From positions 56,358,001-56,422,000 of the forward strand of contig CM060734.1 in assembly GCA_030704615.1 (NCBI GenBank): a stretch of DNA of 64,000 nucleotides. Reading direction: 5' to 3'. Below are positions 2,831 to 58,433 of the stretch, in pieces. This DNA comes from Takakia lepidozioides. Lineage: Eukaryota; Plantae; Bryophyta. Under the pieces are notes generated by a model. It was given only the letters and a program-made list of their open reading frames with translations, was not told the DNA's origin and made no database searches. Positions within the stretch are counted from its first letter, which is position 1, and every line of letters begins with the position of its first letter. The position numbers and the translations under genes are program-made.

Positions 2831-2831
<1 letters not shown>

Positions 2832-8391: not shown

Positions 8392-8412
8392 CTTAACTAA
8401 CTAAGGAACAAA

Positions 8413-8429
8413 CTTCAGTCTCGCCAAAC
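8413..8429 (-). promoter_or_regulatory. Self-priming (Tf1-type) primer binding site
   Basis: Minus-strand GTTTGGCGAGACTGAAG follows the LTR end and is complementary (14/15) to CTTCAATCTCGCCAA at 8720-8706, just downstream of the LTR TATA (8740-8747). Confidence 0.75.
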
Positions 8430-9044: not shown

Positions 9045-12000
9045 GTTTCCAGTATCTGGTACTCCCGTCCAGTTTCCAATATTCCAGTATTCAAGTCGTG
9101 TTCCAATATCTTGTACCCTTGTTCATTGTTATAAAGATCGTCTTGATTCCTATTTACTCATCGTGCATACGGCCACGCCGACCTTGACTTCTTGCCTGGT
9201 CTTGTACCTCTAGTCTGATCTCTTGTTTGTGTTCAGTCATGTTTTCATCCTTGATAGTTTGGTGAGACTAAAGTTTGTTCCTTAGTTAGTTAAGATGGAA
9301 GGCAAATTTGCGGCACCATGTTCATATAATCCACCGCTACATTCCCAATAAACCGCACTTGGACACACTGTCTCTGTTGACACAAAACACGAAATACAAT
9401 ATAATCACTTGTTAAAATAAGAGTCGAGCCAGGGGCACCCCAGCACGTCGGCCATCTCCTGACTGCCACTCCGGCCTGTAGGATGTCATTCTAGAGTCTT
9501 CAGTTCTAGATGCAAGAACTTTGTGCCTCTACTGCCCAACTACAAGCTGATCAGTCTTAAGATTTTGGCAACGCTCTCAACAATTTGTAACAACAAATTT
9601 CAGAGTTGAAGGAGTCGAACAATAGATCTTCAACCTTACGAGTCCCTACTACAACAAATCCTACTGCAACGGTTCCTCCATATCTTCAACATATTACAAA
9701 GGAACCAAAGGTCAGCATGCCCGAAACATTTGATGGGACGAGATCAAGATTTCGCGGTTTTGTTCAACAAGTACGATTGTTCTTACGACTACATCCATAA
9801 TGCTACCCTGATGAAGGTATTCAAGTGGGATTTGTAGGCACCCTTCTATCCGGCACTGCCCTATCTTGGTTTGCACCGCTATTAGAGAAAAATTCGCATT
9901 TACTATACAATTTTGAAGCGTTCATGTCCAAGTTCACTACAACATTTGGAGAGAATGATAGAGAGAGATTTGCAGAGACAAAGATGCGAAATCTTCGACA
10001 AGGAGTACGTCCAGCTTCCGTTTATGTTACTGAATTTCGACAACTTGCGTGCGACCTCGACTGGAATGAGAAGAGTCTCATTAGTCAGTTTCGATGTGGC
10101 CTAAAAGAGGATGTAAAAGATTTGTTGCTGACAATGTCAAACGTGAGTACACTGAGCAAATTCATCACCCAAGTCATTGCATGTGATAATCGTTTGTTCG
10201 AAAGACGTCAAAAGAAGCGATCTAGATGGTCGACGACGCACCATGCCGCTGCTACTATGGCACCAAACACAATGATCTATCAGACATCCAGTAATGACCA
10301 TATGCAGATTGATACTGTCCGATTCAAGCCATTGACGCAACAAGAAAAACAAAGACGATGCTCAAATGGATTATGTCTTTATTGTGGAGAAGATGATTAC
10401 ATAACATTAAACTGCCCCAACAAGAGAAGATTCAAAGCTCGGGGCACAACTCAAGTGTTTGATACGAGAAGGTCGGAAAACGAAGATGTCCAGTCACAGT
10501 ATGAACCATGCGGTTGGACATCCCAAATTCCTCACCAAAAAAATGTCTTTTTCTACCGCCAGATCCTGAACCTTGTTTCACAGTTCCAGTAAAGATCAGG
10601 ATGCAAAATAGAGATATCTTCGTAGAAGCACTTTTGGACTCGGGTGCTTCAGCGTGTTTTATTGACAAAGACTTTGCGAAACAACATAATTTAACGCTCG
10701 TAAGAAAGAAATTCTCGGCCCCTGTTGAAGTCATCGATGGACGACCGTTAGCATCAAGAAATATTGACCATGAAACTCGACCCCTTGAAGTGAAGCTTAA
10801 AAATCAAGCATCACAGATTGTTTTCAATGTCATCCAGTCTTTAACGAATCATGTGATCCTTGGACTTTCCTGGTTTGTACTTCATAATCCTGACATCGAT
10901 TGGCGATCACGAAAAATTTCGGCAAGACAAAAATGCAAAAGTACCAAAGGTATTCAAACTTTGTTTCTTGGAGCTAGAGCCTTCATGAGAGCTACAAAGA
11001 AAGACGCGACATTTGCACTTTATGCGACTCCGATCAAAACCACAACAGACCAAAGTACTTCGACGTTACCAACTCAATATCAAGATTTCAATGATGTCTT
11101 CCAAAAGAAAAATGTAGACATGTTGCCAGAACATCGACCTTATGATTGTGCAATTGAGTTGCAAAAATGAGCTCAACCACCATTCAGCCCGATCTACAAT
11201 TTATCGCAGACGAAGCTGGTTGCTTTACGCAAATACATTGATGAAAATTTGTCAAAGAATTTCATTCGACATTCGAAATCACCCGCGCGGGGCACCCATC
11301 TTATTTGTGAAGAAGAAGACAGATCGTTACGCCTGTGTGTGGACTATCATGGGCTCAACAAAGTCACTATAAAAAATCGTTATCCACTACCACTGATTTC
11401 TGGACTTCTCAAACAACTTGGACGAGCAAATTTTTTCACAAAGATCGACTTGAGAGGAGCTTACAACCTTGTACGAATAATAGAAGAAGACGAATGGAAG
11501 AATGCTTTTCGCACAATGTACGGACATTTCGAATACAGTATTATGCCTTTCGGTCTTACAAATGCTCCAGCAAATTTTCAACACATGATGAATGACATCT
11601 TTCGAGAATTTTTAGATGACTTTGTAGTCATCTATTTGGACAACATTTTGATATTTTCACAGAATGAAGAAGAACATGGTTGCCATGTACGCCTTGTCCT
11701 TGATAAATTGAGAGAAAAATGACTATATGTCAAGTTGGAAAAATGTCTTTTCCACCAATCTGAAGTCGAATTTTTGGGCTACATTATTTCCGACAAATGA
11801 GTCTTTATGGATCAGAAGAAAATACAAACCATCATCGAGTGGATTAAACCAACTTCGGTCCGAGATGTACAATGTTTTCTAGGATTTGTCAATTTATATA
11901 GAATCTTCATAAAAAACTACTCCAAAATTGCTGCACCACTGACACGACTCACAGGGAAAAACAAATTTGTATGGGACGAGAAGGCTGACCAAACATTTGA

Positions 12001-30829: not shown

Positions 30830-33140
30830 GTATCCTTGGTATAAAAACTCAGAATTCCACAGACTCATTTGGTGCTATCTGCCTAGACACATACTACCTA
30901 TGCCAATGGGCTGGCTTTTCATATGAAGACAACACTTGGCAAATTGAGGACGACCTATTTGGCTTGCATCATGACTGTGACCCTGACCACAACCTAACCC
31001 TCCTTATTGCCTTCCATAAACGTATCAACACCAACTACCTCACACACACTGACCAATAGCATGTATCCCAAACCCAAACCCGGGACAACCATCATGTGTC
31101 TCACCCGATGCCTGCTGCCAACATTCAAATTGTCACTACTGAATGCAACCCCGACAAGGACATTCTCCATGCCTCCCCTACTATATGCACAGGCCCCCAA
31201 ATGTCTATTATTTATACTATCAACGGCAGATTCCTTGGCCTCATTTCCAACGATAGGATAGTATGCTAGCTCCTGGAACGATACCTACGTGATATCCCCC
31301 ACGACCAAACCACGCTCCCAGACCAAACTCTCCCAAGCATACGCCCACAACACCATTCCCCTGATATTCTTACCCTCCTCATCAAGGGGATTCCTCCGCG
31401 TGAGCCTAGCCGCGTGAGCGTGTGAGCACGTGAGCGCAGTCAGGTTCACGCCGCGTCAGCAGTTCTAGTCACATTGGTTCACGGGTGGCACAACACATCA
31501 GCAGTCCTCGCTAGCGTGGTTGACGCCACGTCACGTCATGCCACATCACTTCCATAGGCACGGACCTATAACCGTGGACAGAACAGGCGAAAGGGGGGAA
31601 TGCTAGATCGTGAGCCCAGAGGCGTGAGGTAAGTGCCTATTTCCGCGGAATGATTTACCTTTTCCAGTCATTGCAGACTACATCTTTAATATCCATCCCA
31701 CCGCAGCCCCTCGTATCATAAACTGCGATTTGATAAGTATACAATTGCCGAAGTGAGACCTTTATCCCTCCCCTGAATGAGAGGTAGTGAAATCTTGGCG
31801 GGGAGGGGGTAATTGACTAGTAGGAGGGGTGTGGTGGAGTACCGGGCCCATAACCAGGCGAGCGTGCTAGTTTCAACAAGCTTTTGTATTAGTCGATAAC
31901 AGTAAGGTGTAGTAGTAGTTCCCAGTGCAGATCCCCAACCTTGAAAGTAGCCGGAGTGGAATTGAGGCTTTCCTATGTAAAAATCGCCCATATGGAATAG
32001 ACTGATTTAGATATGGTCTACATACTAAGCCCTTGCATGTTTGGAAATCAAGTATCAAGTATCAAGCAGAGGTGATGATCATCGACGGTCATCACAACTA
32101 CCCAAATGCCAAAACAGAGCAGAAGTGATGATCAGCACCGATCATCACTTCTGTTCTTTCTTTTCTTTTTCTTTTTCTCCGTATTGTGTCCAAAAAAAAA
32201 AAAAAATTGCTCTAGTTTGGCATTTTGGTAGAAGTCGTCCTGCTCTGTTTTGGCATTTGGCGTGTGCTTTGTTGGCAAGTTCTTAGAACTCATGCATCAT
32301 GGCACCTTTGGACGTCAAGATGGGCTCTTAGCTTTGAGGGGAAACCATCTTCTGCTAAACTTGTAAGCTTGGTCCACTCAGACCTTTTGTCTTTGTCACG
32401 TAAGGCGATCTGCATGGTTGGGGGAAGATGTTTGCAGATGTGCCCTCTGGTTGGATGCTATTATCCTATTATTTGGTCTTCCATCTTGGTCTATGGTGTA
32501 TCTCTGTTGTGTCGCTATATACTGCAGGCTTCTTTTTGATAACGTGCTCCCTCTTCTCTTCGTTATTTGGGGAAGAAGCAGCGTCTTCCTGGGTCAGCCT
32601 CTATGGAGCCTTATGAGGTTATTTTGTCATCCTTGTAATTGTTATTGTAAAACTTACAATTGTAATTGTAGAATGTTGTGGAATGGATGCCACAGTTTTA
32701 GGCTTATTTAATCCCATTTTGGGTATTCAAATGGTATTCTTGATGGTATTTTGGTTTCATGTTGCCTAAGTTCATCCCACGGTCATAGGACCCTCGGGTA
32801 TAGGCGCCGTATGCTTCTGTTGACGTGGGGATGCTGGCGTGGCGCCACGTCAACATTCCACACCATGGCAACCTGCTGGCATCACGCTCACGCCATGTCA
32901 CCAGTGTGTGAGTGTACGCTCACACACTCACGCGCGAGGCTCACGCAGTTGCGTCGTTGTCCTCATCACCTCTTCCAACTCACCCATTCGTACTACTCTA
33001 GCCCGCTTACCTAGGCCATATGAATCTCCAAACATTTATTAGCCCTATACTGATGGCTCCCTCACAGAAGCCAACGTCGGGTACGGCGTGTATCACGCTG
33101 CCACAAACCAGGGCACGGCCTCCAGACTCCCAAGCCTACC
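30830..33140 (+). pseudogene. Non-LTR retrotransposon remnant with chromodomain-like and RNase H motifs, interrupted by the 31385-32959 insertion
   Basis: YYLCQWAGFSYEDNTWQIEDDL (chromo-like), IQIVTTECNPDKDI, and after the insertion YTDGSLTEANVGYGVY (RNase H N-terminus). C-rich sense strand; frame continues across the empty site. Confidence 0.55.
31385..32959. mobile_element. Non-autonomous TIR element with 9-bp TSD (Mutator-like)
   Basis: TCCTCATCA at 31376-31384 and 32960-32968. Imperfect ~190-bp inverted ends rich in CGTGAG/CTCACG, including GGACCTATAACCGTGG vs CCACGGTCATAGGACC. The extreme termini match poorly. Confidence 0.65.
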
Positions 33141-33654
33141 ACCATACTCCGGGCTGAGTTCATGGCCATCTATGAAGCTCTCTCCCAATTATCTTCATTT
33201 TCCCCTCCACACTATTGCCACACTATATCTTTACGGATATGAGGGTAGCTCACGTGAGCACGCTCACGCTTAAAGTGGAAAACGTGAGCAGAATCCCTTA
33301 AGCGTGAGTAGATTAGTGAATGAAAGCCTACAACCAAGGGAAGAAGAGGGCCTATTGCCGTGGACAAAAACTACAATGCACGAACACATGCACACCCCAT
33401 CCGACAGGACAATCCAAGCTTCATGACGACCGTATGGCAGGGTTGTATACGTCAGTGACGTCACGTCACGTCGGACCTGACGCTGACGCGACCAACGTCA
33501 TGTCAGTTTTGCCGGAAAAATGAGTTAGGTGAAAAATATGCCACGTAGGTGGACACGTTGTATTCCAACGGACACCTTGGCAAGTGAATGAATTGTTTTA
33601 TAAATTACTCCATCCGCCAGTATTTGAGGTCATTTTTAAATCATTATTGTTAAA

Positions 33655-34200
33655 TTGGTGCGACCTCCAAATGTTGGTGGTCGCAGGTTTTATCTTATTT
33701 TTTAATAGTTGCGACCACCAGCAGAGGGGTTGTCGCAACATTTCTATTTTTTTTTAAATAGATGCGACCACCAGCAGGGATGGTCGCATTTTTTCCTTTT
33801 CTTAAACAGCTGCGACCACCGCTACTGGTGGTCGCACAATTTTTATTTTATTTGTAATAGGTGCGCCCACCATCAGGGGGGTGGTCGCAGCATTTTTCTA
33901 TTTTTTTAATAGGTGCGACTACCAGCAGGGGGGTGGTCGCAGCAATTTTCTGTTTTTTAATATCTGTGACCACGAGCATGGGGGTGGTCGCAGCATTTTT
34001 CTTCTTTTTAATAGGTGCGACCACCAGCAGGGGGGTGAGCAATTTTTTGGTTTTTAATATCTGCGACCACCAGCATGAGGGTGGTCGCAACAGTTTTTTT
34101 TTTTTTTAATAGGTACGACCACCAGCATGGGGTGGTCGCAGCATTTGTTAATTAATTTAAATAACATGCGACTTCCTCGTGCAACCTGGATCGGTCGCAG
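33655..34200. repeat. Left subterminal array of TGCGACCACC-n-GGTGGTCGCA hairpins separated by T-rich spacers
   Basis: About 11 units of ~50 bp. Confidence 0.9.
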
Positions 34201-34539
34201 CATTGGATTCTGATTCGTCGAGCGTGTGAGGCTTGGAGGCTGGAGGGTATATAAGGTGGTCACAATGCCCCTCACTTCTTTTGTGGAAAACACTTTTGTG
34301 GCGAGTAAATGTTCTCTATTCCTTGAGCAAGAGTGTAGCCCAAGAGGAGGGTGCGGACCGTTTGCTGTTGTGGCTTCTACCAGAGCCACTGCAGCAAATT
34401 GTCGAAAAGCACAATACTACATGGTGCATTGATCCACTTGGATTGATGCCGTAGTATTGGGCCATCGCATTCTGTTCTAACTTCTATTGTTCTTGACAAA
34501 TCTACCAAGTACACTAGTGTTCTTCGTTCAACCTTAAAT

Positions 34540-36740
34540 CTGTGGTTAAGGTTTTGGGTGTGAGGATAAGAGAAGAGTGGATCTCTTGGTTCACCGTAGA
34601 CCCGCACAAAAATAACGGTGTTCAATGCAATCTCTGTGCATTGAAGTTGGCGGGTCGCAAAGATCGCATATTATATCACCTCGGCTACAGAGATGGGAAG
34701 AATGCAGGGGTTAGTTTGTGCCCAAAAGCCTCCATGCGAGTGAAATCTCACTTTGCCCAATGTGAAGGCAATATCACACCGTCTCTTGATGTGGCCGCGG
34801 CTTTTGAGCCAAACACTCTATGTTCGAATCAAAAATGTCCATCAGAGTTGTACCTATGGGGATTCTTACAAGACGTCTGTTGTTCGTGGAGAAGCCGGTG
34901 GGTCAGGAGCAACACCCGATTGTACACCAACATTTATACGGACCAGACCATTGAGGCAACAATCAATGCAAGAAGGCTTAAATTTGTCGCACAGGAGGAC
35001 TCTGGATAAGAAGTGGGCCCAATTTTTCTACGAGGCCAATATTCCGTTCAATGTCTCGAGGCTTCATGCGTTTATGGCTACTATCAAAGCCACGGCCGAT
35101 TCCAAGTCCACATACACACCTCCGAGTTATCGCGATCTCCGCATAGGATTGCTAGAAGAGACTATGTCTGACCTCACCCAAAAAGTGAATGAAAAGACAG
35201 ATGATTCTCTCCGGAAATATGGAAGCACTATATGTGCGGACGGTTGGAGTTCTGTTACTAATCGACCACTGTTCAATGTCATGCTGGTCTGTCCTGCGTG
35301 GGAACAATTTTTGGGATCCGTTGACACAAGCGGGGAGATAAAATATGCACGTTATCAAGCAGGGTTGTGGACGAGATTCATCGATAAAATTGGAGCTGAT
35401 AAAATTGTCCAAGTGTGCACGGATAATGCATCTAACATGGTTAATATGACCGATATTTTGATGGTACGATATCCCCATCTATATTACCAAGGGCGTGTTG
35501 CTCATATCTTTGATCTCCTTTTGGTGGATTGTGGAAAAGAATCATGGATGAAACAACTAGTAAAAAGGGCAAAGTAGGTTGTGACGTTCATTCGTACATA
35601 TCACATCCCTCTAGCATTGTTTAGAAAGCATGAACCCAAATACAGCCTTAGGAACCCGGGTGAAACTCGCTTTGCCACAAACTTTTTGATAGTGGATCGA
35701 CCGGTGACTGTGATGGCGGGTCTAGAGCAGGTGATCATAGACCCTCAATGGGATGCGTATGTGGGCACCTTACGCGACACTCGTAAGTCCAAGTCTTTGA
35801 ACAAAAGTCGGAGGGTCTGCGCAATCATTCGCTCCGACGATTTCTAGGCGAAATGTGCAAATTTTGTGTACATGGTAGAGCCGGTGTTGATTGCTTTGCG
35901 GGAGTTTGATGGAAAACAACCAATAATGGATAAAACATGGTTGACATTGGAAAACCTTGAGAAGCACATGCAATCATTGAGGCGTTCTCCATTTTCTATG
36001 AACGATGATTTGGCGGCAAGGACCGAGGATGCATTTTACGACTGCAAACGGATGGTTCGCACGAACTTGCATTATGCGGGGGCCTTGGTGAATCCATTCT
36101 TGCTGGATAATACGGATTTGAGAAACGATGTGGATGTCAAGTCGGGCTTGTATAGGTCATCATACAACTCGCGCCCGTGACCATGGCAGAGCGAGTTTTG
36201 TCCGAGTACCAGTGCTTCTCGGATCGCCAGAATCTTTTTCATGACATGTCGGATCCAAAAGCAATGAACATGTGGTCACATGAATGGTGAGATCTAATTA
36301 GAGCTGGAGCAAAAATGTTAGCTCCCATTGCAAAACGTACTCTTATTCAAGTGTGCTCTACCTCGTCCTGTGAGCGGAACTGGAGCAGTTACTCGTTTGT
36401 TCACAACAAGATTCGCAACAGGTTGAATCCTGCCAGGGCTGACAAATTTGTTTATGTCTACACGAAATGTAGGCTACTGCGAGAGAGGACAGCAAGTGAC
36501 GCATCTGCATGGTACGAGAAGAATCTGTTGTGTGAAGAATCTGCCTCAAAGGTCCAATCTAGCAGCAATGATGACACTGACACCGCGAGGGACTCCGATT
36601 CCGACGGTTGGGATGGGTCCGATGATGCGGGCAATCCTCCACATGACTCATATGAATTTAATGATGATGCTGCTGCAATGCATCTATCCTTCGATGACCT
36701 TGTTGTTGATGAACTGCGACATGGTGTCATCTTGCACTAA
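34540..36740 (+). pseudogene. hAT transposase pseudogene (BED finger, DUF659-type core, C-terminal dimerisation region)
   Basis: VQCNLC...RILYHL, WAQFFYEANIPFN, ICADGWS, VQVCTDNASN, PGETRFATNF, LHYAGALVNP, SSCERNWSSYSFVHNKIRNRL. Several stops and frameshifts. Confidence 0.92.
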
Positions 36741-36989
36741 CAATTGTCATTTCACAGGCTACAATTGCAATTTGAGGGGTTGCAATTAAATTTCAGGGGC
36801 TTTAATTGCAATTTGAGGGGTTGGAATTGACAATTTCAAGGGCTCAAATTACAATTTGAGAGGTGGCCGGAGTTGGTCATTTTCGGGACTGGCATTACCA
36901 ATTTTAAGGGCTTGAATTGTATTTTGAATTGTAATTCAAGGTTTAGAATTGGCCATTGGGGGGCTAGAATTACCAAAGCTATGACATCC

Positions 36990-38270
36990 AAAGCAATATA
37001 AAATCATTTGATAGCGGAATGATTGGTTTACCCTTTCAACCATTTTTTATTCACGTCATACTTATCCGGTACTTGTAAGAGGGCATGTGGCTGACACTTG
37101 CAAAGCTTCAAAGCAATGTAAAATCATTTGATAGGGGAACAATTGGTTCACCCTTTCAACCATATTTTACTGACCTCATACTTGTCCGGTACCTTTAAGA
37201 TAGCATATGAAAGACACTTGCAAAGCTTTAAAGCACTAAAAAATCATTTGATATGTTCATGATTGATTCACCTTTTCAATCATTTTAGATTGACTTGAAA
37301 CTTGTGAAAGACCTGTAAGAAGGCATGTACAAGACACTTGCAAAATTTCAAATCAATTTCAAATCATTTGGTAGGGGGACGATTGGTTCACCCTTTAAAC
37401 CATTTTAGATTGATGTCATACTTCTCAAAGACGTGTAAGAGGGCATGTAGAAGACACTTGCAAAGTTTCAAAGCAATAAAATATCATTTCATCGGGGAAG
37501 TTTCCATTCACCCTTTCATCCAATTTTGAATTGAACTAGATTTTTACTAAATAAAATGATTTAGAGGGCATAGGATTGTGGGGCGCAATGGTGTGGGGCG
37601 CAATGATTTTGTTTTTGGCTTGATTTTGTTCTGTGAGTTGAACCCTCACACCACCACATCTTTGCCAAAAAATGTACCAAAGAAAAATGTTTGAAAAAAA
37701 ACGTTTATCCTTTGCTCTATGCTCACTATTGCAGAACTCTCTATGAAGAGTGCATGAAGTTGAAGATAACTTCACCTTGGAGTGCAAATGAGGGAATAAA
37801 ATGTGTTTTGGATGTAGACGATGTCTGTTCATGGTGATATTTTGCATGCAACTCTTCATGTTGTCATCAAGCATATGGCTTCAGAACGGAATTAAAAACA
37901 ATTCATGTGCAGGCGAAAGGTTGTTTCTCGTCTATACGACACGTACCTCCGTTATGAATTTGAATAACCCATTCAAACAACTTTATTGAAGTTCAACTTT
38001 GGTCCATATATGCATAAGTACGTACAAATCACATACACAAAGTTGCAAGCGAAGAGAAAATCATTTGCCCCCCGAACGACTCGTTAAACCTTTCAACCAA
38101 TTTTCAATCATGAATCATTTAATAGGGGAACTATTGGTTCACCCTCAGAACCATTTTAGATTGACCTCATACTTGTCCGGTAACTTAAAGAATGCATGTA
38201 CAAGACACTCCCAAAGTTTCAAATCAATCTAAAATCATTTGGCAGGGGAACGATTGGTTCACCCATTTAC
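36990..38270. repeat. 120-bp tandem repeat (about 4.5 copies at 36990-37530, further copies at 38040-38270)
   Basis: AAATCATTTG...GGTTCACCCTTTCAACC...AAGACACTTGCAAAG recurs at 120-bp intervals; ~500 bp of unrelated sequence interrupts the array. Confidence 0.85.
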
Positions 38271-40309
38271 CCGGTGTACACTGTCACTCTTCAAGATTCG
38301 TGGGTGTGGTGCTTGATTACCCCATATGATGGACCCAGGTGTCATGGCCAAGTAAACATTATGGTACGAGACAAACACAATTGAAAACAACATTTATTCA
38401 AACATGATGTACAGTTAGAGGTCATTAGAAAAAAACGAGGCAAAAGAAAGGCTGCTCCAAGGCGCATTTGTGCCCTATAGCCGCTCAAGGCGGGTACATA
38501 TTTTTGAAATGTACTTGAACGTCTACCGTGGCAAAATGGATGAATTCCACAGTGACGATGTTTCCACCGTGGCAAAATTATTTCCACGGATGACGTTTTG
38601 GCGAGGAGCATCGGCTTCTCGCGCGTTTCTTCCCCGCTTCTCGCGCGCGGCTTCTTCCCCAAGCTTATCTCGCCGTTCTTCCATCTCCTCTTGCAGCGCG
38701 TACTGCTTGCAATGTGAGCAACGTGAGTATCGTGCTCAAATCATTTTCGGTACAATTTCACAAGGCTGCCCAGCTGATGTAGAGCCACTGATGCTTGCAG
38801 GTAGCGTATGGCTTTGAAGTTGGGCTCGAAGGCAGCTACCCAGCAACCATAAGCTGCTGCCATGAGGGAGAAGTATCCAATCTGCTCGTTTTTAATCTTC
38901 CAGGGGTATTTTCTTCATCTTGTTCATCTTGAGTTTTACATTAGAGAACCGCAAGTCTTTAGGTGCATAGTTAGTGATGCCCCATGCAGCTGCAAACCGT
39001 GTATTCTGGTGCGCGACTAGATTTCGCTAGAACGGATTTTACCCGGCTATGTAGCTACCATTTATTCAACGCATGCTGCAGGTACCCTAAGGACGCTGAC
39101 AAAGTTCTGTTAGCCAAGCAAATTGGTTTGATATGAAGCCAGGTAACATTTCATCGCAGAGGGTTTCTTGCTTGCGCTTGACAATGAGGTGTATGCTTGG
39201 GTTTCTGTCTGCCAAGGCTGAGTGAGTAGCTTGCTAAGCGAGCCAGCGCCCTGCTTGTGTCCGCTGGGAAGCAATCCTCGGCGCTCGTCGGTGACCTTAC
39301 CGCAATGTTCGATGCACACCAACATACATGTGATCACAACAAGGACTTCAGAGAAGATCGGAGAACTGACCTTAAAGAGAACAAACTGAGTTCACATAAA
39401 TGGGCCTCTTGACTGGTATGTGTAGAATAACTTTGTGGTTGAGCTTCATATTCAGAACCACGTTGTGTGGCACTAATGCATTTGACTATGGCTCTGTATG
39501 GAGACTTTGGCTCTGGATTTGACTTTGGCTTTGGCACTTGTATGCAGGAGCATTTCTAACAGCGAAGTACAGCAATAGATCCACCACAGTTGCTGCCGCC
39601 ACACTGAAGCAGGTCTGTCCTTACTCACAGCTCGGTCTTCTCTTCAATAGGTACTGACAGATAGGTACTGATGGGTAGGTACTGACAGCCATAAGAAATC
39701 CCTTTGACACTCATTCTAGTCAGAATGTAGTCAGAATGGGAATTTTCTGGATCTGAAAACAGTGGATCAGTGTAAACATCGAGGGACCCTTTCTCTGTAC
39801 ATTTTCTCTACAAGGGGCATCTAAGACAACCATTTCTTCAGATGCGAGAACGGAGTGTCACATGATGAGTCGTGCATTCATGGATGCAACTCGGAGTTCC
39901 AGGAGCTGGAGGCAGTACCAACTGCAGCTATTGTGCAAGGTCCACTGGAGCCAGCTGTAGCAGTTTTCTCTCCTTTGCCGGAGGTCTCTGATGAGCCCCT
40001 CGAACTCTTTTCCACTGTAGGTCAATTTTTGACAAAGTCTCCATCTCTGCTTTTGCTTTTATCTTCCTGTAGTGGAGTGTTACAAACTGGAGTTCTGGGT
40101 GATGGCTTCAAGGTGAGGTTAAGCAGATTCTTGGAGGTACAGTCCCCCCTTCCCTCTTCTCTTCTCTCTGGAGATTTTCTCTACAAGTACAAGTTAGTTT
40201 GATGATGGTTGCTATGGTTGAGAAATGATTTGTGTAGTGTTTTTGTGTGGAAGCAGAATGCAGTTCGTGTGAACAACACCGAATTACCACCAACAACAGA
40301 CTCACGGCC

Positions 40310-41853
40310 ATTAGGAGGACGGTGATGAGGCAGAAATCATTCATGCCCAAAAGCTGGAAAGAGTGAGTATTACCCTCATGAACCGTGCATTAGACCCATC
40401 CGTCACTCCGGATAGTGAAAAGTTTTTCAGTGTGCAAAGTGAGAGGGAGATTTGGCCTATAGCTTGTTTTCAAGTGGCAAAGGAGAACACAGAGGTTCTA
40501 AACTGGGTGTTCCAACAAACCAAACTTCCTTCGTTAATTTCAAGCCCAAGAAGATGGGCAACTTCTTCACGTCCCTGCAAATAGTTTGCATTCTTGCATG
40601 CATTGCATGCAGGAGAGAGTCAAGTCTGTAGAGGGGTCCATGAAGGATGCCGCCATTGCTATTAATAAGCGTTCCCATACATGGAATGGAGGCTTATTTG
40701 CCCAAAACATTACTGCCAAACCGGTGAGTGGGAGTCAGGGAAAAGATCGTTGGAAACCACTGTTGCCCATCCCCATTGAGAGAGTGCATATTTGCACTTT
40801 ACATGCCATGAATAGGATCATTGAGAAAATGGTCCACCTCCATTTCATGTTCGTCTGGACCATTCGCGATAAGAAATTACAAGAGTTAGCTATTGCTGAC
40901 ATGGAAAAAGTGTTGTCCAGCACTGGTGCGCACGGTGGTTTGGTTAAGATCATGAAAGATGATCAACTGTCTGGCAAACTGAGTAATATCCCCAACAAAC
41001 CTTCGTTCAGTGGCCCACATGCTGCCAAACTCTTTAAACCGAGTACTTTAGAGGGAGGCTCCGACAAGTTGTACATTGATGTGGTAAAGTCCGAGCACAA
41101 CCACACGGAAGATGGGGCAAGTAGGAGAAATCGATTAGCATGTTGGGTTGCATTTGATAAGTTGAGCCCCTATCTTTCTGGCCTTGCACTCACCAGTGGA
41201 CAAATAGCTGAATATAAGAAATGTGTGGAGGAATTTGGACGCGCTTTCATCAAGAGTTGGGGGGAGGGTCCAGTTACACACTATATTGTGAGTATCTACA
41301 ACATCCCTTGATATTGATTGGAATGCTTATAGTAAAATTTTGCATTTCAATCATAGTACTTATAGATGACAATGCCAATTGTTCAAGTTGATTGGAATGC
41401 TAATTGTTTAAGTTGATAATTTGCAGCACGTACTGGTCAAGCACACCCCATGGTTTGTTGAAAAGTATGGAAGCCTATCTGTCTGGTCATGTCAAGGAAT
41501 GGAGAACTCGCATCACGCGGCAAATGCGGCATATCAGCGTCATACTCAACATGCTGGAACAAAATGCAAGAAAAGTCCTTTGGTATAGACCTATCAACAC
41601 TGGTTTAGGATCATTCAACATAGGTTCAGAAACAAAAACCTTCAATTGAATGTTGCCATTGATAACCTTAGAGGTGAGGAGGCAATTCAGGGCCCGACGT
41701 GCAGCATCCTTAAACTCAAGCGCAACAGCACACAGCGCTTTGTGGCGATCAAGATGCACTCGGGTTGGCAGTAGGTGGGTACCAAACTCTGAAGAGCCAA
41801 TTGTAGAAGAGCCAATTGAGGAATCACCGGAGGAGCCAATTCATGCATTGTAA
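40310..41853 (+). pseudogene. RAG1/Transib/Chapaev-like transposase core, spliced (intron 41288-41426), disabled
   Basis: Motifs in RAG1 order: WPIACFQVAKE; ANSLHSCMHC (CxxC); HICTLHAMNRI; VTHYI|HVLVKHTPWFVEKYGSLSVWSCQGMENSH (compare RAG1 [33 protein letters not shown]). The second catalytic Asp region appears deleted; there is an in-frame TAG. Confidence 0.75.
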
Positions 41854-43802
41854 ACAACACTTGCTACTACTTCCTATGGTTGTTTTGCTTATGTTGTTTT
41901 GCTTGTTTTGTTTTGTTTTGTTTTGTTTCTTTCTGTTTTGTTTTTTTGGTTGAACAGGGGTTCCACGAGGGTTGATAACTCTGCCCTTGCTGTGGCTGTA
42001 GGTGCCAGCATCATGCGTTGCGAGCTGACAAAACTGCGATGGAACCAAGCCCAGGTCCTGCAGGTGTGCACATCTTCAGCATCTGCCTTACTCCTCAGCA
42101 TCTTGCATGTAAACACAAGCTACCTACAGACCTATGACCTGCAACATTAGTACCTTATCAACAACTGAACATCATAGCCTGCAGGCAGCTCCCTCATGTT
42201 GTCATGTTGCCAGAAGGCCTAGTGCAACTTGTGTCCCTATCTTATCCCTAAACTGCAATGGAACCAAGCCCAGTTCCTGCAGGCCTTACTCATCGGAAAG
42301 GAATTAATTCTGTGGCTGTGGCTTGCCTCCACACCAAAGGAGTTAGCAAATGAGCAGGGTAGACAGGGGCAGACTCAGACTGAAAGCAAAGAAATTGCTC
42401 AACTAGTCATCCCATTGACAACATCTCCATCAGACCATAGTCTGAGATCTGCCCTGTCTATAAAAGGTAAAGAATGGTGAAAAGAAGGAGGTTACTCACT
42501 AGGGCAGACTCAGACTTGCTTTGACTTCTCAGCAGATTGATTATTGAGGGCGGGCGGAGGCGAGAGCGGGCAGATCTCAGCAGATTGGTTTCAGGTCATA
42601 CTTGGGGCGGGATTTCCTTGATCGATACAGTCAGGGCGCCTTGAGAGTGCAGTCTGTTGGCACCAGTCTGTTGATGGAGGTGAAGAGTGCAGCATGTTGA
42701 CAGTGGATAATCGTAGGCGACCATGCACCTCATGAAAACGAATTTGAATCGGTGATTCGAAGCACCGCCGCGAGGTCGTGTTTAGGGATCGACTGCCTCT
42801 GTTCTGCTGGGGGCTCCTGTAAGTCTATCAGACATGCTGCCATCATACAGCGTATTATTAATGGATCTTCAGTTGAAATGGACTAGTAGGGCTAGTGTGT
42901 TTCGTTACCCTACTCTCCATGGACTTGATGATTACAGCATCTTAAGCAAAGATCTTTCAGCACTTGACCACATGACAATAAACTGGAGGGAGGAGAGTAA
43001 TGTTACCCTGGTTCTAGAGAGAGAGTTTTCTTTGATGTGACCTTTACCCATCTTTTTAATGTTCAACCATGCAACTACTCGACTCCAACCTGTCATGTCA
43101 TTGGCGCATTCAAACCCAACTTGGCCCGGCATGCTCCAGGATCTCTGCCAAGCATGATGAGGAAAGCACTGCTCGAAGGACAGCACCGCTCGAAAGAACC
43201 TCCGCTCTGAAAGAACCTTTCATCTCCTGATGCGCAGAACTGAGCCTAACTAGTATGAACCTGAAGCTGCAGCCGTTGCCGCATGCGCCACATCCTCTGC
43301 CCCACAGACATACTAAGCGCCTGGACTTGCTGCTCAGGGGGGGCGGGACAACATTCTCCCTCCCTAAAAGTCCGCACACCTCTCCCTCTCTGTATTACGG
43401 TGTAAAATGGAAGCACGGATAGAGAAACAAGACCCCAGATCAATCTGTGTACCCAGCCAAGACCCAAACATCCATCCATTCAATCTCATCTGGAAAGTGC
43501 AACTTGACTAAACTGGAGCTTAAAATTGCATTAAGCATTAAGTACAAAGAAAGTTACAAGTACTTTCCAAGAGTCTATCCTTTTTCTTTTTTATGTTTTG
43601 GTTAAGTACAAATAAAATCAATCTGTTGCTAATGGATCATTACAGCATTCTTGGTTACCATGGCATCCCCCATCATTATATCAAACACAAGATCCTGGGT
43701 TCGAATTCTAAATATTATTCGCTCGACAAAAGTAACATTTTTGGTCATACCCCCTTCTCCATGATTGTCCCACTTAGCCACAAGGTCTAGGGTTCAAAAC
43801 AT

Positions 43803-43968
43803 CACATAACAAAGGTTAAAATGTCACCTAAAATGTCACATAATGTTATCCTAATGCTCCATAGCCCTAACTCTCAACCAACAAACATCATACTATTCAC
43901 ATAACAAAGGTTAAAATATCACCTAAAATGTCACATAATGTTATCCTAATGCTCCACAGCCCTAACTC
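43803..43968. repeat. Tandem duplication, 95-bp period
   Basis: CACATAACAAAGGTTAAAAT...GCCCTAACTCT at 43803 and 43898. Confidence 0.9.
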
Positions 43969-44055
43969 TAAGACTAAATGTCACCAAATGTTCCAGATGT
44001 CACCATTATCTTGTAGCCCACGGACTAACCCTAATTCTAAGGCTACACATCAGGA

Positions 44056-45434
44056 TTAATTTGCCACAAGTCGTAGTCGTTTCAGAGGCAGCACATGGGC
44101 AGCTGTGTACTTCTTCTCATTTCTGATGTTTACCTGTCAACAAGAAACATGTAATTTTGTCAGAAGCTGTCATAACATTTGAAGCTGTGAATGGATGACC
44201 ATTTCACATACCAAATTCCACATACCTTTTTGGACTTGATCCCATCCTCATCCACCAAGATCGTGAAGTCCTCAGGAATGTCTGATCCAAAAGCAATCGC
44301 AATCTCATGTCGAATGCTTGACATTGACCACTGTCGCCCAACCTCAATTTCTTGTTGTCTTGCTTCATATTCACAACATAAGCTGACCATCTCCACAGAC
44401 TGAACCTGATCCATCGTCTCCCATTTGTTTTCGGATATCGTGCGTTGCCGATTGAATTGAAATGTGGCATATAAAGCAGATCGGCCAATGTGATATTTGA
44501 ATCTCAGTGTTGAACGATCGACAACACATCTAATGACATCTGCTCCAATGGTGATTTTTGTATCCCATCCACTATCCATCAGTGATTCCAACAGCTTCTC
44601 ACATGGTTCTTTGAAAGTGAACATGGTATAGCTCTTAGAGATACTGCTGGCCACGGAAAATAGATCTACCATTACTCCAATTGGCATAAACCATTGTAAG
44701 TGGGTTGATTTGCTTCCTGTTCTGGGTTTCATAGAGGATAAGAAATCAGACCGCAACTTAAGTCTGAAAGACTCACTGGTCGCCATGTCCGGTAATGGCC
44801 AAGCTGGGTCACTAAAACCAGGAAGAGGGATCGGCTGCACTGTTCCAAACTCGGATCTACCATTGCGTGGGGTGTAAAATGCATTGTAGAAGTACACATG
44901 ATCGCGCAGAAGCTCCTTGTGCGTTCAATTTCCACGGCAAGCCTCACCCACTTCGGCGTGCACCACATACAAAACGTCCATTATACTCTTCGGATCAATC
45001 CAATCTTCAAACGTGGAAAGGTATAGGTCTGCAATAAAACCCCATCCTCATCGTATAGTTGTTCCACTGTGCACAATACAAGGTGAACTTGATAGCAAAT
45101 AATGTAAATTTATGAGGATCTTAGACAACTTACAATTGCAAGCGCCTATGCCAGGAGGATAATTGAGTTGTCGTTGCATGTAAGCATGTTGAACACAGAT
45201 TTTGGATACCACTGTGGATCCACCTTCGAAACGAAACTTCAGCACCTTCGCCTTGTACGCCCCCTCTGTTGTAGAAGTTCCGCCGTGCTTCAATGAATCT
45301 TTAGCATGATCGCCTTTTCTACCCGACATCAATGCTACCCAAGCATTACTCTCCAACTTCATGGGAATCCAATTATCATTCTCGTCTTTCGAATTGAACA
45401 AGATCACAGATCCTACTTCACTTCGTGGCCGCAT
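44056..45434 (-). pseudogene. 3-exon gene with BAH-like N-terminal region (exons 45434-45134, 45028-44226, 44133-44056); one in-frame TGA
   Basis: Two in-phase GT-AG introns. YKAKVLKF...VQHAY...NYLYLSTFEDWIDPKSI...YFYNAFY follows the BAH pattern; domain call is by eye. Confidence 0.6.
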
Positions 45435-46249
45435 TTTGTTTCGGATTCACAATTCCCTCTGTATCCCACCAAGAAATCAACTTACGATTTGGAATGAGAT
45501 TTGGAACACGAGATTTGGATTTGCAGCTTTACTGCACTTGTCTGCTTAAGCAACAATTGCTAACTAGTACCTGTCAACCTACAAGTACTAAGGTAAATTG
45601 AGGGTCCACGAGCTGGAGTCTCTTGGGCATCAAATAAACTATTTTTCCCACTAAGTGGCCATACCAGTGGCCGCCTCACCCAACCTATGCTCCTGATATG
45701 TCTCTTGGATAGTTGGATTTAGCACAAGTCAGATTGGATATACTTCAAAGTACCGTACGAAAGGTTCAGCATTTGCTTTTGCAGGGTGGGGCAACTGGGT
45801 TCCTCCAATCCCAGGCTGTTGCAAAAATGATGTTTGAGCATTTTGCTGGACAGCTTTGTAGGCTGGTCTGGTTTGACTTGCATACCCAAGTAGACTCTTA
45901 TCCATGATGACCTTAGTTATGTAGCAATGATTTTTCTATCAAATTGCAGTGATTGCGACCTTGGAATTGGGAAAGGGAAATCCATTTTTGGGTAATCCAG
46001 TTGTGAACCAGACCAGCTCAGCCCAGCTCAGCTCAGCCAGCCCAGCTACCACTTGATTTTTCTGTCAATTTGCAGTGATTGCGACATTGGAATTGGGAAA
46101 GAGAAGTCATGTACTCTTAAAAAGAGACTTTCCCTCCTGAGTTTTTCAATCCTTACAACATCAGTTTATTTTATTGTATCAGTTTATCAGATCACGAGCC
46201 TGAACATTGGAATACAACATTAAGGTAGATGCTGAAAGAGGATTATCAC

Positions 46250-46330
46250 CTTCTTTCCGCAGTTTAGTCCAAGCTGCTTCAAAACTGGTAGTGAGCTGGT
46301 CAAACACAGCAGCTCTTGTTTTCAACAGCC
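46250..46330 (-). pseudogene. Captured fragment of a chloroplast SRP54 (FFC)-like exon
   Basis: TRAAVFDQLTTSFEAAWTKLRKE followed by a GT donor; resembles the cpSRP54 N-domain start (MFGQLT.GLEAAW.KLKGE). Confidence 0.55.
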
Positions 46331-46689
46331 CACCTCTGAGCCCTGTCTACCCTGCTCATTTGCTAACTCCTTTGGTGTGGAGGCAAGCCACAGCTTAGTA
46401 CAGACTCAATCATCTATGGCCTGCAAGAGCTCAAAGCTTTAACTTCTGAGTCTCTGGCTCTTAGTGGCAACCCCAGGAACCCCAGATTGATTTGGTAAGC
46501 AATGTAGTAGGTTGAATCCAAGCTCAATCCATATGAGCAACCCTCTAAGGCATATAGCCACCATACTGAAACTACGACACCTACAGTCAAACCATCAACA
46601 ACATAGCCAAGAAAATGAAGATAGAAGGCAACTGCATTCCTTGTTCACCTAAGAGTGGCCTTGGCATCAGCAGCTAGAGTCCACAAGCG

Positions 46690-46915
46690 TGATTCCAAGT
46701 GTTGCACACGCACTGCAAATGCACACAAACATGATGTGGTCGAGCTTCACCCCTTCCGGCCCCGTCATTTGTTCATAGGTCTCCAAAGCCCCATCCCACA
46801 CCCCTGCTCTGCACACCCTGCAAGCATCGCGTTCCATGACACCACATCTCGTTCAGCTGTGCATCTCGGCCTTTGTGCTTGTGCTCCTGCATAGCGTCTG
46901 CAATGTTGCCCTTGC
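46690..46915 (-). pseudogene. Captured PLS-type PPR gene fragment
   Basis: ERDVVSWNAMLAGCAEQG..GALETYEQM..EGVKLDHIMFVCICSACATLG, with frameshifts. Confidence 0.8.
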
Positions 46916-47269
46916 TGGACCCATCTCCTGGTGCCACTGACTTCAACAGCAGGCTCAGTAGGCTGCCCATCACCAACAATGACGTCAGCCAATCTAATTT
47001 AAGCTCTCCCCAATAATCTCTCCTCTGCCACATACTCTCCATTCAAACAAAGCGTCAAAGTCTCTCACATCAAGAAAATGCAATGTCATGGAACAACATA
47101 AAACCTGGGGTGAATGAACTGCCTACCTCATGTAGCACACGGCCAAGCTTCAGGTAATCCAGAAAACCAGTTGCCCATGCAAACCAAATATCTGCTTCTA
47201 CAATTCTCACCCAATCAGGAGGCAAATTACTTATGGAAGACTGAAAACAGTGAGGGTGAGGGGAAACAC

Positions 47270-47365
47270 CTCTGTCCATAGAGAATGTTCAACAGTTCAA
47301 ACAGCTCAGCATCACTGGCCAGCTCCAGTACAAAGTGTAGCTCTGGATCAAATGCAGCTGCATGC
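47270..47365 (-). pseudogene. Captured exon fragment of a conserved plant protein of unknown function
   Basis: AAAFDPELHFVLELASDAELFELLNILYG followed by a GT donor; recalled as resembling a conserved plant/cyanobacterial YaaW-like family. Confidence 0.45.
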
Positions 47366-47858
47366 ACCAAATGAAATTTAGGGCAAGAACATAGGGACGA
47401 CCTCTCCAAGGTGTGAAGGTGCCCTGGGGCTTCCACTGTTATGTGCATGTGATTCAACCTGTTGCTTGAACTCCTCTGAGTTGTAGGCTAGAAGAAGTAG
47501 GTGACTTTGACTTCATAAGCTCCAGAAGAAACCCACAGCCTTGCCAAATCTGACAAAAAATGATGAGTCACAATGTTGCAGAACTTGGACCAACGTACTC
47601 ACATTCGGTGAGTCCATGGTTGCAATATAAGCGAATGAAAAGCAAACATTTTGAGAGCGAGCACCTCAAGTCTCAAGCAGGGACACCATCGTTGCCTGCT
47701 CTCGGAGCTTTCATTCTCAAAGACAGTAGCAATCGGATGGCTGATAAATAAAACCAAGCTTTACGGTTTCTGCTTATATTGACAAAGTCTACCCTCTAGT
47801 TTTCAAGGAGAACAAACCTTGTGCATATATTACTGATGAGCATTCGAACGTTGAACAG

Positions 47859-48000
47859 GCAAGAAGAACTCTGCGTACCTTGAAAGGGTTGGTGCGGCTG
47901 CAAGCACTGGTGCGGGGCCACACAGTGCGAAGGCAGGCTGCCAGTACCCTGCGGTGCTTGCGAGTGTAAGCTCAAGTGCGAGCACGCCGTGTTCGAATGT
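47859..48000 (+). pseudogene. Captured IQ67-domain (IQD) exon fragment
   Basis: After a CAG acceptor, [44 protein letters not shown]; starts at the phase-0 intron position typical of IQD genes. Confidence 0.88.
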
Positions 48001-48924
48001 GACCTCCTGCATTTCCTGCTCCGTCCCTCGTCGTTCCATTAACTCCCTGTTATCCCGATCATTCTCCCATTTCCTGTCAATACTCAACCATGATCGTATG
48101 GTCCCCCCATTCCACCAATATGTGTAACCTTCATTTCGACGTGGATGCAACGCAAAATACTTTATGATGCCGAAATGATGGAACTTTACAGCCAACGCCT
48201 CATTGTTAGGTTGGACTTTGACAAGCTCAGCATTTGTTTCCCTGGGCGTTTTCCCTGCTAGCTCCCAAGATGGAGGAATGAATTGATCCCCAACAATTCT
48301 AACCCTCCGAATTGTACTATACCCTCCCTGTTTGGGCGCGTCGAGTTGTTGTACATGTGCGTTTATGGATATGTATCTCACGTTCAATGCCGCATCCGCG
48401 GACGAGGCCCTGTCTTCCATGGGAGTGGTTTCGTACATCATTTGGCGTGGGCCTTTGCCATGTCAGACCACCAATCCACAAAGCACAAACAACTCCTCCT
48501 CCGAAGTTGGCATGCGACCTTCAGCTACAGGTGTTCTCGTAACAAACTTGTCCATGGTTTGCCTCAGATTCCATGTGGCATCATGGGCCCGGTCCTCCAT
48601 CCATTTCGTGAACTGGAACTTTGCCATGTCCTCCTCCCATTCATCCCCGGCCAAAGCCTCCCTCATTCTCATCTCCATATTGTGCTGGAATCTAATGAAC
48701 CCCTCATTCCCATGTCAGACATACAAAAGATTCAAACGCATTATGTCATTGTCCTTCAAATAATCGAGCACTACTTGTTTCACCACCTTCGCGGCCTCTG
48801 TGCTTGGATAGTCTTTTTTGTTGACCTGACTATCCCGTTCATATGCATGTTTACGCTTCCTACCTTTACGCCCACTTCCCGAGGAACCCCCTGACACTGC
48901 GTTCGAAGCAATGTTTCCGGACAT
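48001..48924 (-). pseudogene. Protein kinase-like gene, truncated after the N-lobe, two in-frame TGA
   Basis: One frame across ORFs 48715-48924, 48463-48678 and 47830-48441. QGGYSTIRRV, LAGK, NNEALA, HHFGIIK and WWNGGTI correspond to kinase subdomains I-V. Confidence 0.65.
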
Positions 48925-49289
48925 GATGAAAGTACTTTGCGGAATAGACGCGGCTTCGTATCGGAAAACTAAACCCAGACTATTGATAACCTTATATACT
49001 AGCGGACCAATTTCCTCACCCTCTCTTGGTATAGTACCTAAAGCAAACTCTCTCCCGTAGTCCTAGGAAAAAAAAAAAAAAAAAAAAACTCCTCCCCCAC
49101 ATAAATCCACTTTCTCCCCCCCCCACGGCTCAGTCCTGGCCACCGAAGTCGAAACTCCAAGAAGCCCCAGAACCGCACTCACAGAGAGGGAAAAAAATGG
49201 GTTGGGAATGGGGGGTAAGCCCTTATATACTGCCTTGAGCGTCGCGTGACCGCCTCTGCTGCCCATTCGCGCTTCGCCACGTGTCCAGG

Positions 49290-49730
49290 TAGCGGTCGCA
49301 CCTATGGGTGGTCGCAGTTAATAACAAAACAAAAAAACAACTGCGACCCCCCCCTGCTGGTGGTCGCACTTTTTTAAAAACAAAACGAAAATGTTCGACC
49401 CCCCATAAGCGGTCGCACCTAATAACAAAAAAGAAAAAGTCTGCGACCACCACTAGCTGGTAGTCGCACCCATTTAAAAAATAATTAAAAATGTGCGACC
49501 ATCCCCTGCCGGTGGTCGCACCCAATTTAAAAATAAAAATAAAAATGTGCGACCACCCTCTGCTTGTGGTCGCACCTATTAAAAAAAATGAAAATGTTGC
49601 GACCATCATCTGCTGGTGATCGTACCCATTTACAAAATAAGAAAAAATGTGGGACCACCCCCATCTGGTGGTCGCACCTTTTAAAATAAAATAAAAATGT
49701 CCGACCAACCGTTGCTGACGGTCGCATGAT
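49290..49730. repeat. Right subterminal array of TGCGACC/GGTCGCA hairpins with A-rich spacers
   Basis: Mirror image of 33655-34200. Confidence 0.9.
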
Positions 49731-50339
49731 TGACAATATAAATCATAATATATGAATTTTATAGATAAATAATGAAGTCCACGTAATGAGGCCACATCGG
49801 TTGCCACGTTGGTTCTCATAGTAAATAGTCAATAGTGAAGTAAAAAAATAAACATATTTATGTACAGTAACGTCCGTTTAGGACGTGACGTGACGCACGT
49901 CCGTCGCTGATGTCGGACGTGACGCTGACGCGCACGTCACGTCCAAATTTGCAACTAGGCCGTATGGTACGAATGTGTGATGCAAAAACCGATGGATGAA
50001 TGGTTTCAGGATGAATGAAAAGTGGAAAGGATGAATGGTGGATGACTTGTGGATGAGAAATGAGCGAAATGGATGAACCATGACTTCGTTTTTGTTTCAC
50101 GTGGAGCAATTGCATCTCGAGTGTGTCCTGAATTTTAGATTTGTCGGCTGATCCTGGCAGTACTTACTTTGAGGGAACTTGAAGGAAACTGCTGAAGTTA
50201 CAAGGCAATTACATACAGGAGTAAATTTGAGTTACCTATGGATTCTTCTGATGGGGAGGTGGGGCTGCAGAGGAGGGAGGAGGATAGAACATGAGAAGTG
50301 GAGGACAAAACAAAATCGCAAAAAAATTGAGTCCAAAAA

Positions 50340-57059: not shown

Positions 57060-58433
57060 ATCCACTTTGATGGCACCTTGACCTGGGAATACATTGTCCT
57101 AGATGTAATCGTACTTGCTCACTCGTTTCAACTCCAAAATGTTGTCTATGTAGCCTCTCATACCAGAGCCCATTCTTAATGCATTGATCTGATGCCGAAT
57201 GTTAGGTGGACTCAAAGTGGAGAAATGATCCATGACCAGGTCCAATGCTGCACCGTCAAGTTTAGTCCCCACAGAATCCCCTTCACTCAAAATGTGGCTT
57301 TCCAAGAAGGACTTGCTTGCGCCAAGAGCAATTGCAGATGTTGTTGTGGACGGGTTTCTCCCAAACTCCTGTTTAATCAACCTCGATACTGTCTCAACAC
57401 TCTCCCTGTAATCCCCCTTCGAGACAGGATGGTTATGGAATCCGAAATGCACACAAGCTCTTGTCATTGTTTTCAAACGGTGGACAACATAGTACATTCT
57501 TGCTCCGCAGAGCGCCAAGCAGGATGGCACAAGTTTGCAGAATTTGCAGACAAAAGTGTTTGCCGGTGGTGGGGCAGTCCCAGGCTGAAATGGATTTTCC
57601 GCCAGACCCTCCCATTCGCTTTGATTATGAACCCCTGACTGAAGAAAGTGTTTGCAATTCAAATTATCACACCTAAGGTGTCCATTGCAAACTGTTCTCC
57701 TGAAAACAAGCTTGTCATCATTCTGAATATTGAATGTTTTTGTTCTGCACCACGGGTGCCCGTCGTGTTTCTTGTCCATTCTATGCATCATGATTGTTAC
57801 ACCTCCAACTTGCGGAGGAGGAGGCAGCTCGAATAGGATATCGCCATCAAAAGTCTCTGGCAAGAACTTCACAGGCACCTGCTTCAAAGATTCCCAATCA
57901 ATTCCTCGCAACTCACTTTTGAATCCAGCCATTCCTCCCATCGCCCGTAGTTTTGGAATGACACTACAAATCTCTTCTTCATCAGCTTCTCCAACCACAG
58001 TAGGAAGGACTGGATTTGGAATTTCACTTATGTCATCATCGGACGAATCCGAAAGCTCAACGATTGGAGTGGAGGACGTCTGTTCTTTTTTCACCACCAC
58101 CTCCCTCTTGTCTTCAACGACCGAAGCAGCAGTCCCGGGCATCACATATGATCCAAGGGACTTTCGCCGAGGCTCTCCAAGTACTCTGTATCGACCAGGG
58201 CGCACTCTCCACTGGCTGACATGAGTCGTCTCATCACGGTTTTGGAAAGAGTATCTCAACAACTTCCCTTTCAAATCGTACACCTCTTTCTCCAAAAAGA
58301 TGGAGTCATTCTGAAGCTGAAAACGGGTAGCCAAAACATGTTCCAGAACAATTGCAAATCCATTGTCAAGGACTTCCTGGGAGAACGGCACTGGTTTGTC
58401 GTCAGAGAAGAACTCCGCTTCAAAGGAAGCCAT
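57060..58433 (-). pseudogene. N-terminal half of a MULE-type transposase with WRKY/GCM-like zinc finger; catalytic domain absent
   Basis: 444-aa ORF with MDKKHDGHPW...CNGHLRC...C..CKFC...CLALCGARMYYV...VHFGFHNHP; continues through TAG as DNVFPGQG and then breaks off at a palindrome. Confidence 0.65.

Follow-up and report, generated by a model that had tools for sequence, protein, structure and literature searches.

The window analysed here (64,000 nucleotides of contig CM060734.1, positions 56,358,001 to 56,422,000, from Takakia lepidozioides, Bryophyta) contains a 16.5-kb segment with a hAT transposase gene at its left end, a second gene, which we call gene R, at its right end, and an exact 8-bp repeat at its borders. 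On balance we favour the reading that this segment, 33438-49959 of the window, is one dead copy of a high-copy two-gene hAT transposon, which is flanked by an 8-bp target-site duplication (TSD) and has a patchwork interior of nested or filler DNA. Because broken pieces of other DNA make up most of the 16.5-kb stretch, a new type of giant transposon is not evident. The features of the two ends are given below; L011 is a Logan contig from another run that carries a second copy of part of the right end.

33430-33437, no strand: left copy of the 8-bp target-site duplication, CCGTATGG
33438-33510, + strand: left terminus CAGGGTTGTATA with a cluster of ACGTC/CGTCA motifs; the start, CAGGG, fits the hAT rule YARNG
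33658-34200, + strand: left palindrome array, ~10 units of ~51 bp with a T-rich spacer (TRF span 33676-34146)
34250-34258, + strand: left inward TATA box TATATAAGG, 812 nt from the terminus
34518-36737, + strand: hAT transposase pseudogene, 3' of the left TATA box, with a frame change between 36177 and 36291
36740-37534, + strand: 41-bp and 120-bp tandem repeats 3' of the transposase; additional units, including an inverted one, at 38101-38267
48000-49062, - strand: gene R, second gene of the hAT family, 3' of the right TATA box; no homology to L011 past 48000
49224-49232, - strand: right inward TATA box TATATAAGG, 727 nt from the terminus, found in L011 too
49293-49726, - strand: right palindrome array, ~8 units (TRF span 49342-49726)
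49860-49959, - strand: right terminus (...TTGCAACTAGG) with a cluster of ACGTC motifs
49960-49967, no strand: right copy of the target-site duplication, CCGTATGG

Mirror-image ends and the hAT transposase gene

The repeat CCGTATGG occurs just twice in the 64-kb window, at the two borders of the segment, and neither copy can be extended at either side. A duplication of 8 bp is that of hAT transposons, and the positional chance of this pair is about 1%. Inward from the duplication, each end of about 0.8 kb contains the same features in the same order: a cluster of ACGTC/CGTCA motifs (33450-33510 on the left, 49860-49945 on the right), an array of palindromic units of about 51 bp and an inward-facing TATA box. 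Each unit is a TGCGACC(ACC)...(GGT)GGTCGCA palindrome, which is absent from the rest of the window. Taken more narrowly, the two arrays extend over 33658-34140 and 49341-49677. The right array repeats the left one in reverse complement, down to the loops and spacers, and the two ends are therefore true mirror images. The ACGTC motifs, the palindromes or both would be the subterminal binding sites of the transposase, and the palindrome arrays may serve additionally as promoter-proximal elements.

The gene 3' of the left TATA box has the domain structure of a hAT transposase, with a DUF659 core (PF04937, E 5.3e-31, at 34744-35574) and a C-terminal dimerisation domain (Dimer_Tnp_hAT, PF05699) at 36291-36737. 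The latter match has an E-value of 5.5e-4 and scores 20.1 bits, just below the Pfam cut-off of 21.4 bits. The closest public proteins are hAT transposases with these two domains, at 44-64% identity. In-frame stop codons at 35575-35577 and 35845-35847 lie inside gapless blocks of the alignment with these relatives, thus the transposase gene is dead in this copy. A preliminary description of the window, made from the sequence alone, had picked out the exact flanking repeat, the mirrored ends and a hAT transposase inside them, and all three are borne out here. The copy is useful in that both termini and the duplication are preserved, which defines the ends of the hAT family. The flanks outside the element contain no recognisable domain.

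Abundance and decay of the family, and gene R

Logan contigs of four runs, among them X1-X3, which are one sample and probably the source, and X5, which is a plant metagenome, were aligned to positions 31938-37937. The flank has a summed contig depth of 400-6400; the depth rises to about 17000 in the bin containing 33438 and stays at 17000-50000 through 37537. This jump at the left boundary means that the hAT family is high-copy. Run X1 alone contributes 6770 contigs, which are spread across all identity classes (99% or more, 95-99%, 90-95% and under 90%). Contigs of high depth span 37383-37660; the tandem repeats 3' of the transposase and the sequence as far as about 37750 are therefore family sequence as well. 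A reading in which everything past about 37.5 kb is private nested DNA fails, since the same contigs bridge this point.

The left flank (31938-33437) is itself repetitive, its summed depth rising from 532 in one bin to as much as 6355 in the next, 33138-33337, so the hAT copy sits within another repeat.

In the window, gene R is a single frame from 49062 to 47833 that is interrupted by stop codons at 48715-48717 and 48463-48465 and contains a frameshifted patch. L011 (1333 nt) aligns to positions 49304-48000 at 95.2% identity and includes the final palindrome and the TATA box as well as an intact frame of 368 codons (P0195). Because gene R is intact in L011 together with the palindrome and the TATA box, it is the second gene of the hAT family. 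Past 48000 the window and L011 are unrelated, directly after a donor-like GAG|GT, and the L011 sequence beyond this point was not found in the window. Gene R is lineage-specific, dead in the window copy and convergent with the hAT transposase gene.

The intact product P0195 matches no Pfam family, and gene R has no significant sequence match in the PDB. A structure model made from the single sequence has a pLDDT of 35, which is too poor for a fold search. Protein language-model look-alikes gave nothing usable for gene R, nor for the interior gene Y described below, and a metagenome scan with gene R gave a single weak match of 31 residues. By eye only, a basic stretch of P0195 resembles a nuclear-localisation signal. 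Opposite the break in gene R, on the + strand at 47880-48000, a cysteine-rich reading (WCGCKHWCG...CGACEC...) could be a zinc-finger-like gene fragment.

The two parts of the family sequence carry the same bias in their substitutions. In the left part, at sites where all contigs differ from the window, the window has A/T for family G/C at 83 and 66 sites, whereas 31 and 35 sites go in the opposite direction. In the right part, compared with L011, the corresponding numbers are 15 and 11 against 2 and 4. Both ends have decayed alike, and such an A/T excess is the mark of a silenced copy that has undergone C-to-T decay.

Several points weigh against the single element that we favour. Taken alone, the CCGTATGG duplication is weak evidence for it, as 11% of random 91-nt zone pairs from the window have some 8-mer in common. 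The terminal inverted repeat (TIR) is weak, with 7 of 12 terminal bases paired, chance yields TSD-plus-TIR pairs of equal quality within 23 kb, and the right terminus, read inward, is CCTAG, a misfit to the hAT YARNG rule. Family membership is demonstrated for 33438 to about 37750 and for 48000-49304 only, the read alignment having covered 31938-37937, and part of the middle could be family sequence degraded beyond recognition. The window contains no second copy of either flank, hence the empty site cannot be reconstructed from it. No second full copy and no empty site were seen, and the element may have grown either before or after its last transposition.

The common 8-mers, the weak TIR and the frequent chance pairs would also suit a quite different history, in which there is no single element: unrelated DNA happens to be flanked by a pair of partial, oppositely oriented hAT copies and the 8-bp repeat is a coincidence. 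We consider this very improbable. The two copies of CCGTATGG stand 12 and 15 nt outside their respective mirrored clusters, the left part corresponds precisely to the transposase half and the right part to the gene R half, no family sequence is present in duplicate between the two, and both parts show the same decay bias. The case for one element rests on this placement of the repeat outside the clusters, on the mirrored structure of about 0.8 kb and on the depth jump at the left boundary.

The interior of the element

Between about 37.75 and 48.0 kb we recognise the following features, beginning with a stretch that overlaps the end of the family sequence.

37538-38100, no strand: stretch with a ~40-bp piece of a far more abundant repeat
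40324-41850, + strand: dead C-terminal portion of a transposase with the RAG1 fold (CMCT/Lanisha-like), frameshifted near 40545
42315-42368, no strand: left arm of a 54-nt inverted repeat without mismatches, paired with 46341-46394
44062-45446, - strand: gene Y, partner of the RAG1-fold transposase, with no known domain and convergent with that transposase
46341-46394, no strand: right arm of the same 54-nt inverted repeat, paired with 42315-42368
46650-46950, - strand: frameshifted PPR-like fragment, recognised by eye (RDVVSWNAM at 46825-46851, GVKLDHIMF at 46727-46753); PPR_2 matches only at E 0.05

A transposase fragment in the interior comes from a different transposon. An open reading frame (ORF) at 40538-41308 has 161 homologues and belongs to no Pfam family. 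Relatives of this protein, namely the longer P0182 (811 aa) and P0042 (599 aa) and also P0020, contain the motif series D...C(2)C...H(4)H...E, which is that of the CMCT clade. The window copy retains C(2)C, H(4)H and E, about 26 residues are gone, including the second catalytic-D motif. Similarity begins only at 40324, and the N-terminal half of the transposase was not found in the window. A model of P0042 built from 42 sequences has a pLDDT of 68.5, with core blocks at 85-95, and the best 47 PDB matches listed for it are only RAG1, amphioxus RAGL (BbRAGL) and HzTransib (E 1e-5 to 2e-2, TM 0.16-0.44, mostly 0.3-0.4). The predicted fold of this transposase family is thus of the RAG1/Transib type, as modelled on the relative P0042 and not on the broken window copy.

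Gene Y accompanies this transposase. Its homologues are 50-56% identical and domainless, and gene Y has no significant sequence match in the PDB. In L007-L009, which are one and the same metagenome locus, and in L010, a contig of 1.09 Mb, the RAG1-fold gene is arranged tail to tail with gene Y, at a distance of about 100-400 bp, and no hAT transposase homologue is found within 10 kb of the pair. As the pair occurs elsewhere without a nearby hAT transposase, the RAG1-fold fragment and gene Y belong to a separate element. In the window the two genes are also tail to tail, here 2.27 kb apart, and the third gene that stands head to head with gene Y in L010 is missing from the pair. No CA...TG termini with a target duplication of 2-5 bp were found around 40324-45446; the fragment is truncated at both sides. 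The preliminary description had named a RAG1-like protein as a second transposase of the element; the fold stands, by way of the model of a relative, but the gene is a dead, truncated piece of a different transposon.

Outside the hAT element, at 57099-58433 on the - strand, is an ORF of 444 aa with 32-33% identity (E 1e-14 to 1e-26) to the L010 ORFs (8066-9418) that are head to head with gene Y. It matches no Pfam family and may, from this similarity, be the third gene of the RAG1-fold transposon family.

All 110 ORFs of at least 55 aa in 37.4-49.35 kb were scanned against Pfam, with exons searched individually, and only chance-level matches were obtained. No kinase, RING or BAH family was found in these ORFs at E up to 0.1, and no kinase in P0195. 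Regular expressions for a HRD-type catalytic loop and for a RING-H2 pattern found neither, the DFG, APE and VAIK patterns were not scanned. The kinase-like gene of the preliminary description was therefore not recovered, and for its BAH-like gene the only trace is a BAH match in one of 13 relatives of gene Y, at E 0.11. Where at least four host-gene fragments had been counted, the PPR-like fragment is the only host-gene-like piece that we recognise in the interior.

These scans bear on the possibility that the copy is an internally deleted and replaced form of a giant hAT lineage with three genes (transposase, RING and kinase). Gene R would then be the first exon of an atypical kinase gene whose catalytic exons, like the RING gene, are no longer present. 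A related locus, L003 from an ENA assembly, has a RING-finger ORF of 585 aa (L003:196-1953, zf-RING_2 E 5e-7) located 8 kb upstream, on the same strand, of a hAT transposase 44-53% identical to that of the window, and residues ~245-340 of P0195 resemble a kinase N-lobe, by eye only. The absence of Pfam kinase and RING matches and of the HRD-type and RING-H2 patterns speaks against such an origin, no kinase is among the PDB matches for gene R, and a tblastn search with the L003 RING protein and its neighbouring ORFs against 37.5-48.2 kb gave no match. We regard a three-gene ancestry as tentative, a proposal with the balance of the evidence somewhat against it.

The arms of the 54-nt inverted repeat are 3972 nt apart, around gene Y, and have no target duplication. 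A search for TIRs with TSDs in 36.7-48.2 kb found this repeat only, and the corresponding scan of related loci was too noisy to place their ends. The arms are free of mismatches in a copy that is about 5% off its family, which means that at least one interior rearrangement postdates the onset of decay; judged by this, the repeat is probably the product of a recent rearrangement.

This bears on a further alternative, in which the segment moved at its full 16.5 kb, together with its interior, as a single giant hAT element with cargo, any nested or filler DNA having been gained beforehand. The duplication is intact at 8 of 8 positions, both ends are complete, and a dead copy could have been mobilised in trans by the many other copies of the family. 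Against this, the pieces that make up the interior are incomplete and lack element borders, gene R is broken at 48000 relative to L011, the perfect inverted repeat places at least one rearrangement late, and no other copy with the same interior was seen. Transposition of the complete unit seems to us rather unlikely. The truncated RAG1-fold piece, the break in gene R and the late inverted repeat mean that the size of the segment is better explained by nested or filler DNA than by an organised cargo. The giant cargo element of the preliminary description thus survives as a single TSD-bounded hAT element, of a repeated family with an extra gene, but not as a carrier of organised cargo.

We therefore return to the dead two-gene copy with a patchwork middle. 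Under this reading a hAT element would have inserted by cut-and-paste, with an 8-bp target duplication, in a moss-type land plant. The parts belonging to the family are the two mirror ends of about 0.8 kb, the transposase gene at the left end with the tandem repeats behind it and gene R at the right end, the two genes converging. The ~10 kb from about 37.75 to 48.0 kb would be a patchwork of the doubly truncated RAG1-fold transposon piece with gene Y, the PPR pseudo-fragment and simple and dispersed repeats, probably gained by nested insertion, by filler DNA in the repair of excision gaps, or by both. The interior would then have been rearranged, after the decay of the copy had begun.

Two smaller features of the interior are repeats. 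The ~40-bp piece at 37722-37760 has a summed depth above 120000, several-fold above that of the hAT family, and the loose ends at 37721/37723 and 37756/37764 agree with each other, so the piece belongs to a still more abundant repeat. At 43630-43970 a GGTTCGAAT-type B-box-like motif near 43690 is followed by 73-nt direct repeats (43802-43874 and 43897-43969, 97% identical). This region might be a tRNA-derived short interspersed element; an ARAGORN tRNA scan and an Rfam scan of the hAT element found nothing.

Comparison with known transposons

The closest known system is maize Ac/Ds, especially Ds2 and the compound Ds-like elements, which like the window element are hAT transposons with 8-bp duplications and short subterminal repeats (PMC3260210). 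With their ends intact, maize Ds elements have taken up filler DNA, pieces of captured genes and nested transposons; as here, the original interior has given way to filler, to the occasional gene fragment and to nested long terminal repeat or DNA transposons, and many of these copies are located in repetitive DNA and decay there (PMC3260210). The window element is about twice the size of the 7.3-kb compound Ds example (PMC3260210). The ends differ, with about 0.8 kb and 51-bp palindrome units here against short hexamer repeats and an 11-bp TIR in Ac, and so does the number of genes, which is one in Ac, whereas here a second gene is present at the far end.

Maize MuDR, a member of the Mutator superfamily, has two genes that run inward and converge from promoters in the two terminal repeats, and it resembles the window element in this convergent inward gene pair. 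It differs in its 9-bp duplications, TIRs of about 200 bp and MULE transposase, none of which is found here.

A second, non-transposase gene within a hAT family is also known from the hAT7 families of rust fungi, which encode a TET/JBP dioxygenase (PMC12730594). These families are fungal and make 7-bp duplications, and their accessory gene encodes a known enzyme fold (PMC12730594), whereas gene R has no recognisable domain.

The fragment inside the element can be compared with the CMCT clade, which comprises EnSpm, Mirage, Chapaev, Transib and RAG1 (PMC8245031, PMC12730594), and with Lanisha, a cut-and-paste superfamily published from the moss Ceratodon purpureus, whose genome is also abundant in hAT elements (PMC8245031). 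The likeness, which makes the internal family a candidate relative of Lanisha, consists in its D...C(2)C...H(4)H...E motif and in the model matches to RAG1, RAGL and Transib only. The fragment differs in having neither CA...TG termini nor a 2-5-bp duplication.

Pack-TYPE transposons are non-autonomous carriers of host coding fragments, and share with the window element the arrangement of transposon ends around foreign DNA that includes gene pieces (PMC8903248). The window copy differs from them in that it keeps a dead transposase gene and derives its foreign DNA mostly from a different transposon. A single PPR-like fragment was seen in it.

The hAT transposons are usually described as elements of a few kb with one gene, and a family with another conserved gene downstream of a mirrored promoter array, in copies of up to 16 kb, would widen this picture and could interest users of hAT vectors, for whom limits of cargo size matter. 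It is conceivable, and in our view unlikely, that the lineage is a true two- or multi-gene transposon that uses its mirror ends as paired promoters and binding platforms and moves a unit of about 16 kb with more than 10 kb of foreign DNA, including a RAG1-fold transposon. Such a mobile unit would be a hAT vector for large cargo that occurs naturally in a land plant. As the copy is dead and its middle a patchwork, it is by itself no demonstration of large-cargo mobilisation.

Arrays of motifs ahead of the transposase gene also occur in a relative. In L013, from another sequencing run, about 25 tandem copies of a ~26-bp motif (core CTGCGGTCGATCT) are found at 4250-4800, directly upstream of a hAT transposase that is 64% identical in protein sequence to that of the window. 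The motif differs in sequence from the palindrome units of the window, and such arrays, with a sequence that changes fast, are apparently characteristic of this hAT lineage.

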